Origin: Auanema rhodensis
Taxonomy: Eukaryota > Animalia > Nematoda
Length of the DNA: 64,000 nt
Assembly: GCA_964057225.1 (NCBI GenBank)
Contig: OZ059896.1
Coordinates: 11,966,001-12,030,000, forward strand
Direction of reading: 5' to 3'
In this document: positions 42,801 to 49,836 of the stretch, in pieces
Layout: each line of letters begins with the position of its first letter
Numbering within the stretch: position 1 is the first letter of the stretch
Made by a program: the position numbers and the translations under genes
Notes under the pieces: model-generated
What the model saw: the letters and a program-made list of their open reading frames with translations, nothing else
Told to the model about the DNA's origin: nothing
Database searches by the model: none

Positions 42801-45385
42801 TTTTTAAATTTTTAATCATTAAAAAACATTTAAATTTCAATATTGTGATGCTCAAAAACTGAAACATTTAAATATTTTGTATTTTCTTAACCATTTCACT
42901 CCATCTCTTTTATTTAATTCCATATTTTAAACAATTTTATATTTCTACCACGAATTCATAACTTCATTTTTTAAATTTTTAATCATTAAAAAACATTTAA
43001 ATTTCAATATTGTGATGCTCAAAAACTGAAACATTTAAATATTTTGTATTTTCTAAACCATTTCACTCCATCTCTTTCATTTAATTCCATATTTTAAACA
43101 ATTTTATATTTCTACCACGAATTCATAACTTCATTTTTTAAATTTTTGATCATTAAAAAACATTTAAATTTCAATATTGTGATGCTCAAAAACTGAAAAA
43201 TTTAAATATTTTGTATTTTCTAAACCATTTCACTCCATCTCTTTCATTTAATTCCATATTTTAAACAATTTTATATTTCTACCACGAATTCATAAATTCA
43301 TTTTTTAAATTTTTAATCATTAAAAAACATTTAAATTTCAATATTGTGGTGCTCAAAAACTGAAACAGTTGAATATTTTGTATTTTCTAAACCATTTTAC
43401 TCCATCTATTTTATTTAATCCCATATTTTAAACAATTTTATATTTCTACCGCTATTTCATAATTTCATTTTTTAAATTTTTAATCATTAAAAAACATTTA
43501 AATTTCAATATTGTGATGCTCAAAAACTGAAACATTTAAATATTTTGTATTTTCTAAACCATTTCACTCCATCTCTTTCATTTAATTCCATATTTTAAAC
43601 CATTTTATATTTCTACCACGAATTCATAACTTCATTTTTTAAATTTTTAATCATTAAAATACATTTAAATTTCAATATTGTGGTGCTCAAAAACTGAAAC
43701 AGTTGAATATTTTGTAATTTCTAAACCATTTTACTGCATCTCTTTCATTTAATTCCATATTTTAAACAATTTTATATTTCTACCACGAATTCATAACTTC
43801 ATTTTTTAAATTTTTAATCATTAAAAAACATTTAAATTTCAATATTGTGGTGCTCAAAAACTGAAACAGTTGAATATTTTGTAATTTCTAAACCATTTTA
43901 CTCCATCGCTTTTATTTAATCCCATATTTTAAACAATTTTATATTTCTACCGCTATTTCATAATTTCATTTTTTAAATTTTTAATCATTAAAAAACATTT
44001 AAATTTCAATATTGTGATGCTCAAAAACTGAAACATTTAAATATTTTGTATTTTCTTAACCATTTCACTCCATCTCTTTCATTTAATTCCATATTTTAAA
44101 CAATTTTATATTTCTACCACGAATTCATAACTTCATTTTTTAAATTTTTAATCATTAAAAAACATTTAAATTTCAATATTGTGATGCTCAAAAACTGAAA
44201 CAGTTGAATATTTTGTATTTTCTAAACCATTTTACTCTATCTATTTTCTTTAATCCCATATTTTAAACAATTTTATATTTCTACCGCTATTTCATAATTT
44301 CATTTTTCAAATTTTTAATCATCGAAAAACATTTAAATTTCAATATTGTGATGCTCAAAAACTGAAACATTTAAATATTTTGTATTTTCTAAACCATTTC
44401 ACTCCATCTCTTTCATTTGATTCCATATTTTAAACAATTTTATATTCCTACCACGAATTCATAACTTCACTTTTTAAATTTTTGATCATTAAAAAATATT
44501 TAAATTTCAATATTGTGATGCTCAAAAACTGAAACATTTAAATATTTTGTATTTTCTAAACCATTTCACTCCATCTCTTTCATTTAATTCCATATTTTAA
44601 ACAATTTTATATTTCTACCACGAATTCATAACTTCATTTTTTAAATTTTTAATCATTAAAAAACATTTAAATTTCAATATTGTGGTGCTCAAAAACTGAA
44701 ACAGTTGAATATTTTGTAATTTCTAAACCATTTTACTCCATCGCTTTTATTTAATTCCATATTTTGAACAATTTTATATTTCTACCGCTATTTCAAAATT
44801 TCATTTTTTAAATTTTTAATCATTAAAAAACATTTAAATTTCAATATTGTGATGCTCAAAAACTGAAACATTTAAATATTTTGTATTTTCTTAACCATTT
44901 CACTCCATCTCTTTCATTTAATTCCATATTTTAAACAATTTTATATTTCTACCACGAATTCATAACTTCATTTTTTAAATTTTTGATCATTAAAAAACAT
45001 CTAAATTTCAATATTGTGATGCTCAAAAACTGAAACAGTTGAATATTTTGTAATTTCTAAACCATTTTACTCCATCGCTTTTATTTAATCCCATATTTTA
45101 AACAATTTTATATTTCTACCGCTATTTCATAATTTAATTTTTTAATTTTTAATCATTAAAAAACATTTAAATTTCAATATTGTGATGCTCAAAAACTGAA
45201 ACAGTTGAATATTTTGTATTTTCTAAACCATTTTACTCCATCTCTTTCATTTAGTTCCATACTTTAAACAAATTTATATTTCTACCACGAATTCATAACT
45301 TCACTTTTTAAATTTTTGATCATTAAAAAATATTTAAATTTCAATATTGTGATGCTCAAAAACTGAAACATTTAAATATTTTGTA
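24898..45385. repeat. 167-bp AT-rich satellite array, left arm (~123 monomers)
   Basis: TTATATTTCT recurs at 24901, 25068, 34921 and 44941, all exact multiples of 167. Diagnostic variants are ACCGCTATTTC/ACCACGAATTC and CAGTTGAA/CATTTAAA. Confidence 0.98.
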
Positions 45386-45560
45386 TTATATCCCATGTCT
45401 TAAGCTATTTATTTTCCAAATAACATATCTTCTCGGTAATCAATAAAACAAAAATTAACAGAAATCAACAGTATTTCGTAACACATTGTAAAATGAGCGT
45501 ATCATTACCCGTGGTGCTAACCAGTAATGACACGCCCCCTAACTAACACATAAACATCAG
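45385..45560 (+). repeat. DIRS left inverted terminal repeat (~176 bp)
   Basis: Reverse complement of 49622-49797; I saw no mismatches by eye. Confidence 0.95.
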
Positions 45561-45592
45561 TTTTATTTTCCGACATACGCTGATCGGTCGCT

Positions 45593-46318
45593 ATGCCGTC
45601 TTCACGGGAACCTTCAACTCCCCGTGATTTGGATTCTTCGTCTCATTATTCGCGTTCGCCTTCGCGAGAGCAAGATATTCGACGTTCACGTTCTAGATCC
45701 GTTTCGTCATCTAGATCCTGTTCACTATCTCTCAGGCCTTTCAAGCGCCAGAGGCCTTGTCCTCAACCTAGCTCTGTTCCTCTACCTCCTTCAACTCCAG
45801 CCTCCAAGGAACGACCGGTTATCTCGCTTGCGGAAGATCTTCTTACTAACTTTGAACATCTCGCAGCTGGTATTACTCTCCTTCCTTCGGACCGCTCATC
45901 ACTAATTCAAGAACTCCCTCGCCCGGAATCCATCTTAGCAGATCTCCCGGTGTTGGACTCTAAACTTCAAAATCTTTTGGATGGCTCAACGAGATCATTT
46001 CATAAAGTATCAGAACAGGAGTTACGAGGACTTTACGAAAACGAGTTACAAGTTCTGAATATCGTTACTATTATCCGTTTTCTCGGATCCAATGATGAAG
46101 GTGGCCCACTTTCTCCGAAAGTTGCTGGTTATCTCTCAATTCTGGAACGCTTTGTCAGTGCAAATCTGCGCACTTTCTTAGGAGCAACTCGAGAGCTTGC
46201 CCTTCTCAGAATGGGATTCTCTCGCCCTTCACAGAGCATGCCGAACTATCGTAAAGTTGGCCTTAGTTCGTCTTCCTCCTTTGATACGGTACTAGGAGTA
46301 AGTCACTCCGCCTTTTAA
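45593..46318 (+). CDS. DIRS Gag-like ORF1 (exon 1 of predicted Gag-Pol fusion)
   Basis: Ser/Arg/Pro-rich N-terminus followed by a helical region; first ORF after the ITR. Its stop lies inside the predicted intron 46298-46340. Confidence 0.85.
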   Translation: MPSSREPSTPRDLDSSSHYSRSPSREQDIRRSRSRSVSSSRSCSLSLRPFKRQRPCPQPSSVPLPPSTPASKERPVISLAEDLLTNFEHLAAGITLLPSDRSSLIQELPRPESILADLPVLDSKLQNLLDGSTRSFHKVSEQELRGLYENELQVLNIVTIIRFLGSNDEGGPLSPKVAGYLSILERFVSANLRTFLGATRELALLRMGFSRPSQSMPNYRKVGLSSSSSFDTVLGVSHSAF

Positions 46319-46340
46319 CCTTATATTATTTGTTTTACAG

Positions 46341-48404
46341 GCTCAGGCCGTGGAACTGTTTGGGCGAGCACTGCGAGCCGAACTGAGAAAACCTAACGAG
46401 GTTATGAAACACCGCTCGGAGCAATCTCAACGTCGTGTGGTACCATCGGACCGTAGACACACTGTTAATAGGAAAACTACTTCCCGCTCTGTTGCTCAAC
46501 GTACGAAGTTAGTTCCCTCCTTTTCTGCACGTTCATTAGCCAATCATTGTTCATTTTGGTTTTCTATTTCGTCTGATTTGTTCATTTTGCAATCAGTTAT
46601 TAATTATCGTTTACCATTTAACGGTTATCTACCTCCTTTGAGTAATTTTGATTCCTCGCTTAATAACTCGGTCTCTTCAAGAAACCTTGACTTATTGATA
46701 GTGGATATGCTGTCAGAAGGCACCATTAGACCTATTCAAAAAAATGAAAAGGTATTCTTATCCCCTGCTTTTGTTGTGCCCAAGAAAGATGGAGAGTTTC
46801 GCTTTATTTTGAATCTGAGACGACTCAATTCATATCTGCAGGACCTTCCCTTCAAGCTAGAATCAATTAAAGATGTATCACTATTGATACAACCATCGGA
46901 TTGGTTAGCTAAAATAGATTTTTCGTCTGCATATCATGCTGTTCCTATTGATCCAGAACATCAACCTTTCCTAGCTTTTCGAGCTGGAGGTTCTGGTTAT
47001 GTTTTTCAAGCCATGCCATTTGGCCTTAGTTCAGCTCCATTCACCTTTCATAAGATCGTTAGAGTCCTTGCTTCGTATTTACGAAGTAAAGGAGTTCGCA
47101 TTATTAACTATCTAGACGATTGGCTGTTTATTGGGTCATCTGTCACTCAAGTACAAGAGCATATTCAGTTAGCCTTGTGTTTATTCAAGCAATCTGGTTT
47201 CTCAGTTAACCACACTAAATCCATTTTAATCCCTACTCAAAGAATAGAATTTCTGGGAATCAATCTAAATGCCCAGGAAGGTACATGGTCAATACCAGTA
47301 TCAAAGTTAGATCGCATTCAAAATGCATTAGATCGGGTAAATAAACCAGACGCCACATTAAGATGTTTTGCATCCCTGTTGGGCTTATTGAACTTTACTG
47401 CTATTGTTCATCCCGAAATCAGTTTTTTCGTTCACTCTCTCCAACGTGCGCTAGGTGTGGTATCCTTGAAAGCTCTCTCTTCTTCCTTACACATTAACGA
47501 AAAGTTAAATAGATCGCGAGATTTGGACATAATCTTTCCTCAAGTTAAATTTATCTTGGAAACTGTAATGCATCTGCCTGTTTCGTTTTGTCCGTTTTCA
47601 CCTTCGATAACTATAACATCCGACGCTTCCTTGCGAGGATATGGAGGTTGTATGGACGGTCAACAAATTTCCGGAATCTGGTCTATTGAAGAAAAGAAAC
47701 TTCATATTAACTGGAGAGAACTGAGCGCTGCTTATAAAGCGGTTTCATTCTTCCTCAAATCTAAAAGTTACGTAGACGTGACCTTACTTCTTGATAACAT
47801 GTCGGCTATTGCTTATATTAACAAACGAGGAGGCACTCGTTCGGCTGAAGGCTCAGATATAGCCTTAAAGTTATGGGAATTTTGCACTGTCCGCGGTATC
47901 AGAATAAAAGCTTCTCATATTCCGGGACGACAAAATATTTCCGCCGACAAGTTATCGAGAGGACAGTTCTTAGATAGTGAGGAGTGGTCCTTACATGATG
48001 AAATCATTAAAGAAATATTCCTTGAATGGGGAACACCTAACATTGATCTGTTTGCTTCTTCAAATAATTTCAAATTAGATAGATATATTTCATACCTTCC
48101 AGACCCGGGAGCTTGCTTTATCAACTCCTTTGCCGTAAATTGGGCAGAAGTATCACAAGGATACGCTTACATTTTCCCTCCATTTTCAATGGTGGGGAAA
48201 GCAATAGCAAAGATTGTTCGAGATCGATGCAAAGCAATCTTAATAGCTCCGAACTGGACAAGTCAATATTGGTTCCCTACATTAAAGAAAATTCACAAGG
48301 AAGTACGGGTATTACAACACCCTTACCTCTTACGGAACCCAGTGGGAGAAGTTCACCCACTGTTGAAGAGCCACAACTTCCAGCTCTTAGCATGGAGAAT
48401 TTGA
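46341..48404 (+). CDS. DIRS reverse transcriptase / RNase H / adenine methyltransferase-like domain
   Basis: RT motifs FVVPKKDG..R.ILNL, KIDFSSAYH, MPFGLSSAP and YLDDWL. RNase H motifs TSDAS, HINWREL, LDN and ADKLSR. MT-like motifs IDLFAS..N, YIFPPF and APNW...WFP. Confidence 0.96.
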   Translation, partial: AQAVELFGRALRAELRKPNEVMKHRSEQSQRRVVPSDRRHTVNRKTTSRSVAQRTKLVPSFSARSLANHCSFWFSISSDLFILQSVINYRLPFNGYLPPLSNFDSSLNNSVSSRNLDLLIVDMLSEGTIRPIQKNEKVFLSPAFVVPKKDGEFRFILNLRRLNSYLQDLPFKLESIKDVSLLIQPSDWLAKIDFSSAYHAVPIDPEHQPFLAFRAGGSGYVFQAMPFGLSSAPFTFHKIVRVLASYLRSKGVRIINYLDDWLFIGSSVTQVQEHIQLALCLFKQSGFSVNHTKSILIPTQRIEFLGINLNAQEGTWSIPVSKLDRIQNALDRVNKPDATLRCFASLLGLLNFTAIVHPEISFFVHSLQRALGVVSLKALSSSLHINEKLNRSRDLDIIFPQVKFILETVMHLPVSFCPFSPSITITSDASLRGYGGCMDGQQISGIWSIEEKKLHINWRELSAAYKAVSFFLKSKSYVDVTLLLDNMSAIAYINKRGGTRSAEGSDIALKLWEFCTVRGIRIKASHIPGRQNISADKLSRGQFLDSEEWSLHDEIIKEIFLEWGTPNIDLFASSNNFKLDRYISYLPDPGACFINSFAVNWAEVSQGYAYIFPPFSMVGKAIAKIVRDRCKAILIAPNWTSQYWFPTLKKIHKEVRVLQHPYLLRNPVGEVHPLLKSHNFQLLAWRI

Positions 48405-49324
48405 CTGGCCTAATTCCTGATATATCTAATGATACCATGTCTCTATTCTTAAACTCCTGGGCTGCAGGAACTCGTAAGCAATATAATACAGCTCTTAAAA
48501 AGTGGGAAATTTATTGTGCTTCTCACAAAATTTCTATTACTCCCTCTCCTTCAACCGCTGCAGATTTTTTGTCATCTATGTTTAACGACAAAGCCGTTTC
48601 AACAGTTTTGGGCTATAAATCCGCACTTTGTGCTTTAGCTGACTTTCTGAAAATTAGTCCCCCTCTTCGGGATAACCCTTTACTTAGTAGAATATCTAGG
48701 GGAGCGTTCAGATTAAAACCTCCACAACCTAAATATATAGATTCTTGGGAACCTTCCATTGTTCTTTCATATTTAGAAAGTCTGGGGCCCAACAACGAAT
48801 TATCGTTGGAACTACTAACCAAAAAATTAGCAATGCTATTAGCTTTATGCTCCCCAAAACGAGTGTCAGAAATAGCGCAGTTCTCTATAGACCATGTTCA
48901 ATTCAATGATAACGGTGTTACGTTTTTCATAAATTATAGAAATAAAAATAGAAAAGCGGGAATACCTCATAAAGCTACCTATGAGATTTCTTTAGACAGA
49001 CCGTTACTCTGTCCGGTAGCATGTATCAAAGCATATTTAGACAAAACTGAGTCTAAACGGCTTTCAAATAATTTACTGATATCCATCTCACAAGGAACGA
49101 GTATTACAAGTACAACAGTAGCTCGGTGGATAAGGGATATTTTATCGTTGGCAAAAATACCGCATAGATTTTCTGCGCACTCTACCCGTCACGCTTCTAC
49201 TTCGTCAGCTTTTAAAAAAGGGGTTCCATTGAAAACTATAATGAGTGCCGCAAATTGGAAATCCGACACTTCATTTTTCAAACACTACTGCAGAACCAGA
49301 TCCTTTCAAGCTGCAATTTTTTGA
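48113..49324 (+). CDS. DIRS tyrosine recombinase (likely start ~48392)
   Basis: Catalytic set KRVSE (R), HSTR (HxxR) and W.S...F.KHY (Y), plus LCPV. It overlaps the end of the RT ORF in another frame. Confidence 0.95.
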   Translation: MLYQLLCRKLGRSITRIRLHFPSIFNGGESNSKDCSRSMQSNLNSSELDKSILVPYIKENSQGSTGITTPLPLTEPSGRSSPTVEEPQLPALSMENLTGLIPDISNDTMSLFLNSWAAGTRKQYNTALKKWEIYCASHKISITPSPSTAADFLSSMFNDKAVSTVLGYKSALCALADFLKISPPLRDNPLLSRISRGAFRLKPPQPKYIDSWEPSIVLSYLESLGPNNELSLELLTKKLAMLLALCSPKRVSEIAQFSIDHVQFNDNGVTFFINYRNKNRKAGIPHKATYEISLDRPLLCPVACIKAYLDKTESKRLSNNLLISISQGTSITSTTVARWIRDILSLAKIPHRFSAHSTRHASTSSAFKKGVPLKTIMSAANWKSDTSFFKHYCRTRSFQAAIF

Positions 49325-49327
49325 AAG

Positions 49328-49403
49328 ATAGCTTAAGACATGGGATATAATTTCTTAAATTTTCCTATTTTATGAAGTAAAATTTTAATTATATCCCATG
49401 TCT
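49328..49403. other. DIRS internal complementary region (ICR)
   Basis: ATAGCTTAAGACATGGGATATAAT is complementary to the element's left end. The following TTCTTAAATTTTCC...CCCATGTCT is complementary to the right end. The two halves overlap at AAT. Confidence 0.95.
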
Positions 49404-49621
49404 GACTTCCCTCCACCATCCCCTGTGTGTGTTCACCATCCCTCTTTTATATTCAGCTTGAAAAAAATGTTTATGTTATTGCAGTAGATGGTCGTCTTCG
49501 AACTCAATACCTGTAAAACCTTTTAATAGAAACAACAGTAAAATGAAGAAGTGATTTTATTGTTTCTTTTGTTTTGATGTATTATACCTTGTTACATTGT
49601 GAAGTTTATATTTTTTTGACT

Positions 49622-49836
49622 CTGATGTTTATGTGTTAGTTAGGGGGCGTGTCATTACTGGTTAGCACCACGGGTAATGATACGCTCATTTTACAATGTG
49701 TTACGAAATACTGTTGATTTCTGTTAATTTTTGTTTTATTGATTACCGAGAAGATATGTTATTTGGAAAATAAATAGCTTAAGACATGGGATATAATTAA
49801 AATTTTACTTCATAAAATAGGAAAATTTAAGAAATT
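49622..49836 (-). repeat. DIRS right ITR (49622-49797) plus right extension (49798-49836)
   Basis: Inverted copy of the left ITR, followed by a unique extension that is complementary to the ICR. Confidence 0.95.

Follow-up and report, generated by a model that had tools for sequence, protein, structure and literature searches.

A predicted 43-nt spliceosomal intron at the Gag-Pol junction of a DIRS retrotransposon family in Auanema rhodensis

The element and its gag-pol junction

The DNA analyzed here, which we refer to as the window, is a stretch of 64 kb from Auanema rhodensis, and it contains a complete DIRS-type retrotransposon of ~4.45 kb at ~45385-49836. The features of the element, with positions counted from the first letter of the window, are as follows.

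45385..45560, + strand: left inverted terminal repeat (arm 45380-45560; repeat I1, 181 nt, 99%)
45593..46297, + strand: exon 1, gag, with 235 codons ahead of the donor, the ATG included; 35-48% identity to the gag of four related families
46298..46340, + strand: predicted spliceosomal intron, 43 nt, phase 0; donor GTAAGT at 46298-46303, acceptor TTTTACAG at 46333-46340
46313..46319, + strand: TTT TAA C, a possible +1 frameshift site; the TTT is readable in both frames and the stop comes next
46316..46318, + strand: gag stop TAA, inside the predicted intron; TAG in the old copy L008
46341..48404, + strand: exon 2, comprising LFG linker, RT, RNase H and Dam-like methyltransferase (MT); 687 codons plus stop
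46353..46364, + strand: ELFG motif (GAA CTG TTT GGG), a conserved anchor 12 nt past the acceptor
~46776-47267 and ~47979-48314, + strand: RT domain and Dam-like methyltransferase, respectively, within exon 2
48113..49324, + strand: tyrosine recombinase ORF (Phage_integrase), overlapping the end of pol by ~290 nt
49349..49403, + strand: internal complementary region, 100% complementary to 49782-49836 (repeat I2)
49622..49836, + strand: right inverted terminal repeat with extension; the repeat itself is 49622-49802, and the satellite restarts at 49834

The two arms of the inverted terminal repeat (ITR), 45380-45560 and 49622-49802, are 99% complementary. Sequence common to the DIRS copies begins at 45385 and the satellite that surrounds the element stops near 45387; the ITR was found in all eight copies of this family, from arm position 6 onward. 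The unspliced gag ORF (45593-46318) is 241 aa long and has no Pfam match. In the exon 2 frame Pfam identified RVT_1 (E = 1.9e-22) and a Dam-like MT that fell narrowly under the cut-off (E = 9e-6); it made no RNase H call, and homologues have PF17917 and PF05869. The ORF at 48113-49324 matched Phage_integrase (E = 1.2e-13), and the element thus carries a tyrosine recombinase in place of a DDE integrase. The recombinase frame is open from 48083, with its first ATG at 48227, and is the same as the gag frame (mod 3). A splice of gag to the recombinase was also considered, but no pyrimidine-rich AG site in the interval 47900-48900 would bring the phase-0 donor at 46298 into the recombinase frame.

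ITRs together with an internal complementary region (ICR) make up the DIRS1-type architecture, and the split direct repeats of PAT-like elements are absent. By its RT/methyltransferase, its recombinase and its repeat architecture, the element belongs to the DIRS1-like tyrosine-recombinase retrotransposons, and it shares gag, RT/RNase H/MT, the recombinase, the long overlap of pol with the recombinase, the ITRs and the ICR with the surveyed DIRS1-like elements (PMC3266345) and with DIRS-1 of Dictyostelium (PMC7192593).

An earlier note on this DNA had proposed that a short spliceosomal intron joins gag in frame to pol, and its description of the junction proved accurate. The GT of the GGA/GTAAGT donor (a slash marks the putative splice site) lies at 46298-46299, exactly 235 codons past the gag ATG (the ATG is at 45593 and codon 235 ends at 46297), the AG of the TTTTACAG acceptor lies at 46339-46340, giving a segment of 43 nt, and the gag stop TAA at 46316-46318 falls within that segment. 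Exon 2, which begins with GCT CAG GCC GTG GAA CTG TTT GGG at 46341, shares its frame with the RT ORF ending at 48404, and removal of the segment would yield the expected fusion of ~922 aa (235 + 687 = 922 codons). The LFG motif is likewise located downstream of the acceptor, where ELFG follows after 12 nt, and it recurs in all of the related families described below and in remote DIRS Gag-Pol proteins of other organisms, where no V...Q segment precedes it.

The RT frame is closed upstream by a TAA at 46299 and opens at 46302, and it overlaps the gag frame by 14 nt. A search of both strands of the 64-kb window for the pattern GT[AG]AGT followed by TTT(N)CAG at a distance of 31-62 nt returned a single occurrence, which is this junction. 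Just 3' of the acceptor, ELFGRALRAEL is conserved across families at the protein level, indicating that it is translated in the RT frame. Moreover, the distance between the conserved MP(S/N) motif and ELFG is 28 residues in family A (the family of the window element) when the segment is left out and 29 in the intron-less family D, and this near-equal length is the contiguity expected of a removed segment. All homology comparisons were made separately, exon by exon.

As a yardstick for the segment we used the host's own introns, taken from myosin genes at other places in the genome, where neighboring exon matches are mostly separated by 43-47 nt. With their ends fixed by GT..AG and an unbroken frame, ~22 introns measured 40-56 nt, most of them 43-49 nt and three exactly 43 nt, with donors of GTAAG, GTATG or GTAAC and acceptors of TTTCAG or TTTTAG, which are the same types as those of the element's segment. 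Judged by its size and ends, the predicted intron is a typical minimal intron of the host.

The genome searched amounted to 181 Mb in 112 contigs, and it contains eight copies of family A. Over 45593-46700 they are 98-100% identical, and each of them has the segment. In seven copies the 43 nt are unchanged. The oldest copy, L008, is ~2% diverged from the young ones, and its exon 2 is disrupted by a stop and a 1-nt indel; it carries 4 changes in the 43 nt of the segment, a higher density than the 35 in 1765 nt of flanking coding sequence, and preserves the GT, the AG, the 43-nt length and a stop codon in the segment. Because the 43-nt form is common to L008 and the young copies, the frame-breaking form must be ancestral to the whole of family A, and transposition continued with it. 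The presence of the predicted intron in every new copy further requires that unspliced RNA be the usual template of reverse transcription, and therefore that splicing, if it takes place, be either partial or separated from templating.

The same site in related families

Four further DIRS families (B, C, D and F) were found by searching the genome with each exon separately, and were aligned on ELFG; a second genome search, with the family B junction, returned the same five families only. At the junction the families read as follows.

Family A (window element): GGA/GTAAGT ... TTTTACAG/GCT; 43 nt, stop inside, frame shifted
Family F (L017/L018, nearest gag relative): GGA/GTATAC ... TTTTCAG/CTT; 48 nt, in frame, stop-free
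Family B (L019): GAG/GTAAAT ... TTTTCTCAG/GAG; 45 nt, in frame, stop-free
Family C (L020-L029): GAG/GTAGGA ... TTATTCTCAG/GAC; 45 nt, in frame, stop-free
Family D (L032-L038, 958-aa ORF, at least 12 copies): GAG/GAT; segment precisely absent

A GT...YAG segment is present in four of the five families at the identical codon boundary, in phase 0 and 12 nt upstream of ELFG. The segments of F, B and C start with GTA and end with a pyrimidine-rich tract and CAG, and the interiors of the A and F segments have no evident similarity, as judged by eye. The splice consensus is best in family A among the four, the donors of C (GTAGGA) and F (GTATAC) being weak. We scanned the coding sequences of families A-D, 4131 codon sites in all, for GT..YAG segments that are in frame, measure 42-51 nt and have 8 or more pyrimidines among the 10 nt before the AG, and the junctions of B and C alone qualified; the splice signals at the junction are not chance.

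The earlier note had asked for copies and related families to be aligned for splice sites and phase and for intronless copies to be sought. GT/AG, site and phase are kept in A, F, B and C, and family D lacks exactly the segment. It had also held that sister copies with a continuous ORF, or with no conserved GT/AG, would mark the break as a private frameshift, and here the outcome was divided. The sister families keep GT/AG and a pyrimidine tract, so that the break is not simply a private frameshift, but their ORFs do run continuously across the site.

Of the families found, D, which encodes Gag-Pol in one frame of 958 aa, has the largest number of copies (at least 12, near-identical, on contigs C1, C3, C4, C5 and C6), and losing the segment did not hurt it. 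In all, this gag occurs in at least five DIRS families of the genome, of which several comprise a dozen near-identical copies. Family F consists of two identical gag-plus-LFG remnants (G000:C3:5321218-5330099) that are truncated soon after LFG and have an intact 347-aa open frame, with 48% gag identity to family A. A distance of 5.2 kb separates the two remnants, which are located between histone H2A and H3 genes and were apparently duplicated together with a histone repeat unit. In one copy of family C (L030, G000:C1:17199268-17202765) an 84-nt deletion takes the end of gag and the donor; it does not follow the intron boundaries and is an uninformative case of ordinary decay. The site was also sought outside this genome by a protein word search with exon 2, in which the best identity was 37%.

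The direction of change was addressed with trees of both proteins. The gag tree, ((A,F),(D,(B,C))), unites D with (B,C) at a support of 94/99, and on it the placement of D outside all intron-bearing families was rejected with a p-AU of 0.033, a marginal value obtained with outgroups that align poorly; the pol tree has the same topology, with low support for the order of A, D and B+C (69/44) and with the alternatives not rejected (AU p = 0.31 and 0.12). An origin of the putative intron once, before the five families split, followed by one precise loss in D, is favored, not proven. A loss located exactly at the GT..AG boundaries is what the copying of a spliced RNA would leave, and we take it as indirect evidence that the segment was spliced at least once. 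The intron was probably inherited from the common ancestor of a DIRS clade in this genome.

Splicing, translation and rival explanations

We consider it likely that the 43-nt segment is a genuine host-type minimal spliceosomal intron. For the central claim of the earlier note, that a real intron of host type fuses Gag to RT/RNase H/MT, the comparative evidence is strong, comprising the shared site and phase, the absence in family D, the size and the variable interior; the splicing itself we infer, and with it that splicing would occur at the present day, would be partial, and would set the Gag:Gag-Pol ratio. A search for public RNA runs containing the element gave none, and three small runs under the same species label (contigs, ~20 Mb each) had no match to 45561-49621, which does not prove the element silent.

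Known sites of +1 frameshifting, such as those of RF2 and antizyme, have a slippery codon ahead of a slowly decoded stop (CUU UGA C, for example), and it was reasonable to consider whether the window element uses a similar site. Its RT frame is open from 46302, which provides the 14-nt overlap, and its last gag sense codon is TTT, then T, then the stop, so that a ribosome pausing at the gag stop could allow Phe-tRNA to slip from TTT to the overlapping TTT and produce Gag-Pol with 14 extra residues. Such a product would have 42 residues from MP(S/N) to ELFG, near the 44 of families B and C. A programmed frameshift nevertheless leaves unexplained the GT, the pyrimidine tract and the CAG in three families that need no shift, as well as the exact absence of the segment in D, and the peptide that the segment of A would encode has no evident similarity, by eye, to that of F, B or C; we regard this explanation as unlikely for family A. 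Separate translation of Gag and Pol from unspliced RNA, by reinitiation or internal initiation at the first ATG of the RT frame (46404, 86 nt beyond the gag stop), would agree with the many DIRS elements that have separate gag and pol ORFs (PMC3266345). However, the conserved ELFGRALRAEL lies upstream of that ATG in the RT frame and must be translated, and the conserved splice signals are again left without explanation, and we give this proposal hardly any credence.

Another conceivable account is that a coding linker of 15-16 residues, already present in the ancestor, was never spliced; its GT/AG ends would then be shared by descent, D would represent an ordinary deletion and A would have been frame-broken by a 2-nt loss, either spreading without its own Pol or dead on arrival. 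This accords with the open, in-frame segments of F, B and C, and with a conservation between B and C that exceeds that of synonymous sites, including two changes at third codon positions within a conserved Cys-His-Lys-Arg-Pro. The intact ORFs of the family A copies, which are 99-100% identical, say little about selection and do not prove function, the copies being too young. On the other hand, the deletion in D matches the GT..AG boundaries, the pyrimidine tract before CAG occurs in all four families and is unique among the 4131 codon sites, and A has a perfect GTAAGT. Furthermore, the presence of the 43-nt form in L008 as well as in the young copies indicates that the family transposed while its frame was broken, the nearest donors of Pol are just 36-44% identical, and the matches of the genome searches by exon included no intact in-frame member of family A. 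A linker that was never spliced is therefore an improbable account of the junction.

Our preferred reading of the segment as a minimal intron does not preclude its translation in the sister families. In-frame and stop-free segments in F, B and C are unlikely by chance, these being several AT-rich pieces of 45-48 nt. Between B and C the segment is 73% identical, and the third codon positions of the flanks only ~47%, and we accordingly rejected a pure neutral intron for these two families, the segment being better conserved than synonymous sites. The mismatches of the B and C segments are distributed 3:4:5 over the codon positions and those of the flanks 50:106 (positions 1+2 vs 3), a trend in the direction of non-coding change that is not significant (p = 0.11). 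The segment in B and C may thus be translated, and perhaps spliced inefficiently.

Exitrons, as reportedly defined by Marquez et al. in 2015, are introns of host genes that lie inside coding exons, have a length that is a multiple of three and contain no stop. The segments of F (48 nt), B (45 nt) and C (45 nt) resemble them in being in frame and stop-free, such that retained and spliced RNAs both encode Gag-Pol, and on our reading they may behave like exitrons that are spliced partly or rarely. They differ in that exitrons are known from host genes, and the segment of family A has no such in-frame property. The RNA that is copied would have to retain the segment, and an in-frame, stop-free version would let that same RNA yield Gag-Pol in F, B and C. 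In family A, where the in-frame property was lost and the donor is the strongest, any Pol would need splicing or recoding.

For family A we propose that the unspliced RNA would serve as the template for new copies and, if translated, would give the 241-aa Gag without the LFG motif, and that the spliced RNA would give the 922-codon Gag-LFG-RT-RH-MT protein. Splicing efficiency would then fix the ratio of Gag to Gag-Pol, as in the Ogre elements of plants. Given that B, C and F read through in frame and that D has no segment, the clade in general does not require Gag to be made on its own. The effect on the ratio may be adaptive, or the intron of family A could be the tolerated decay of an exitron. 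A broader scheme, which we offer tentatively and hold to be possible rather than probable, is that a host-type mini-intron has been kept at the Gag-Pol junction through a long history of reverse transcription, as an in-frame exitron whose retention does no harm in most families and as an obligatory splice switch in A. Were such a switch to operate in A, the unspliced RNA would be both genome and Gag-only mRNA, and the spliced RNA would be the Gag-Pol mRNA. The scheme would imply a mechanism that bars spliced RNA from templating, with family D as a rare escape, and splicing or nonsense-mediated decay would offer the host a means of acting on the element.

Known systems and genomic setting

Retroelements normally lose introns, since they copy themselves from processed RNA. 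The closest known mechanism, by analogy, would be the partially spliced intron of plant Ogre elements. As in Ogre, the predicted intron lies between structural and enzymatic ORFs and its removal is needed for the whole polyprotein, and as in Ogre the genomic copies keep the intron, which points to partial splicing and to an expected excess of structural protein over enzyme. Ogre, however, is a plant LTR/integrase element with a spacer of ~270 bp whose splicing was shown experimentally, whereas the present element is a tyrosine-recombinase (DIRS) element of a nematode with a 43-nt minimal intron predicted from sequence, and, unlike Ogre as described, it has sister families with an in-frame segment or with none.

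Penelope-like elements, in which introns were reportedly described by Arkhipova et al. in 2003, offer another parallel in that host-type introns are retained through many rounds of reverse transcription, although these elements form an unrelated class (GIY-YIG endonuclease, telomerase-like RT) whose introns are not known to gate a Gag-Pol fusion. They are the classic case of retroelements with spliceosomal introns, and are held to be exceptional in this respect (PMC4209133). In Drosophila copia and barley BARE1, alternative splicing gives a subgenomic mRNA for Gag only (PMC3735527), and the same strategy is described for Arabidopsis Ty1/copia elements (PMC5580714). Copia and BARE1 resemble the scheme proposed here in that splicing, not frameshifting, balances Gag against Pol and the unspliced RNA is the replication template, but the polarity is opposite: in copia and BARE1 the spliced RNA encodes Gag only and the unspliced RNA Gag-Pol, whereas here the unspliced RNA would encode Gag only and the spliced RNA Gag-Pol.

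Within the DIRS class itself, the text of the survey of Piednoel et al. in 2011 makes no mention of introns or splicing, and none of the 12 nematode genomes in that survey yielded well-conserved DIRS1-like copies (PMC3266345); PAT-like elements were the only ones it recorded in nematodes (PMC3266345). In Dictyostelium DIRS-1 the introns studied were artificial reporter introns only, and cDNA arose from both spliced and unspliced RNA (PMC7192593), so that an occasional intron-less descendant such as family D is to be expected. In the full-text-searchable literature we found no natural intron in a DIRS element, the matches being reporter introns or unrelated uses; older subscription papers lay outside this search, and a prior mention is possible. 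The strategy predicted here is known from other retroelements, and we found no report of it for the DIRS class.

A predicted intron at one site in diverged families that is cleanly lost in one of them constitutes a natural experiment on the choice of RNA template, and the same case bears on how structural and enzymatic proteins can be balanced without a frameshift. A splicing-gated polyprotein has been shown for plant Ogre, and the expression strategy of DIRS elements is poorly known. Annotation pipelines that assume intron-less transposon genes would label an element of this kind as frame-broken, and would miss its probable activity.

The window element is inserted in an array of a 167-bp satellite, which extends over at least 39 kb (from 24898 to the window end; ~233 units, 85% matches) and is interrupted by it. 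The satellite stops at monomer position 3 and restarts at position 1, such that the monomer register has a 3-nt overlap across the insertion; this overlap counts among the likenesses to DIRS1-like elements, and a 3-bp recombination core would explain it. One further copy of family A, L002, lies 42 kb downstream in the same satellite, and the other six copies lie outside this satellite. The base composition of the window is strand-asymmetric (T 24685, A 21499, C 10612, G 7204), presumably owing to the satellite.
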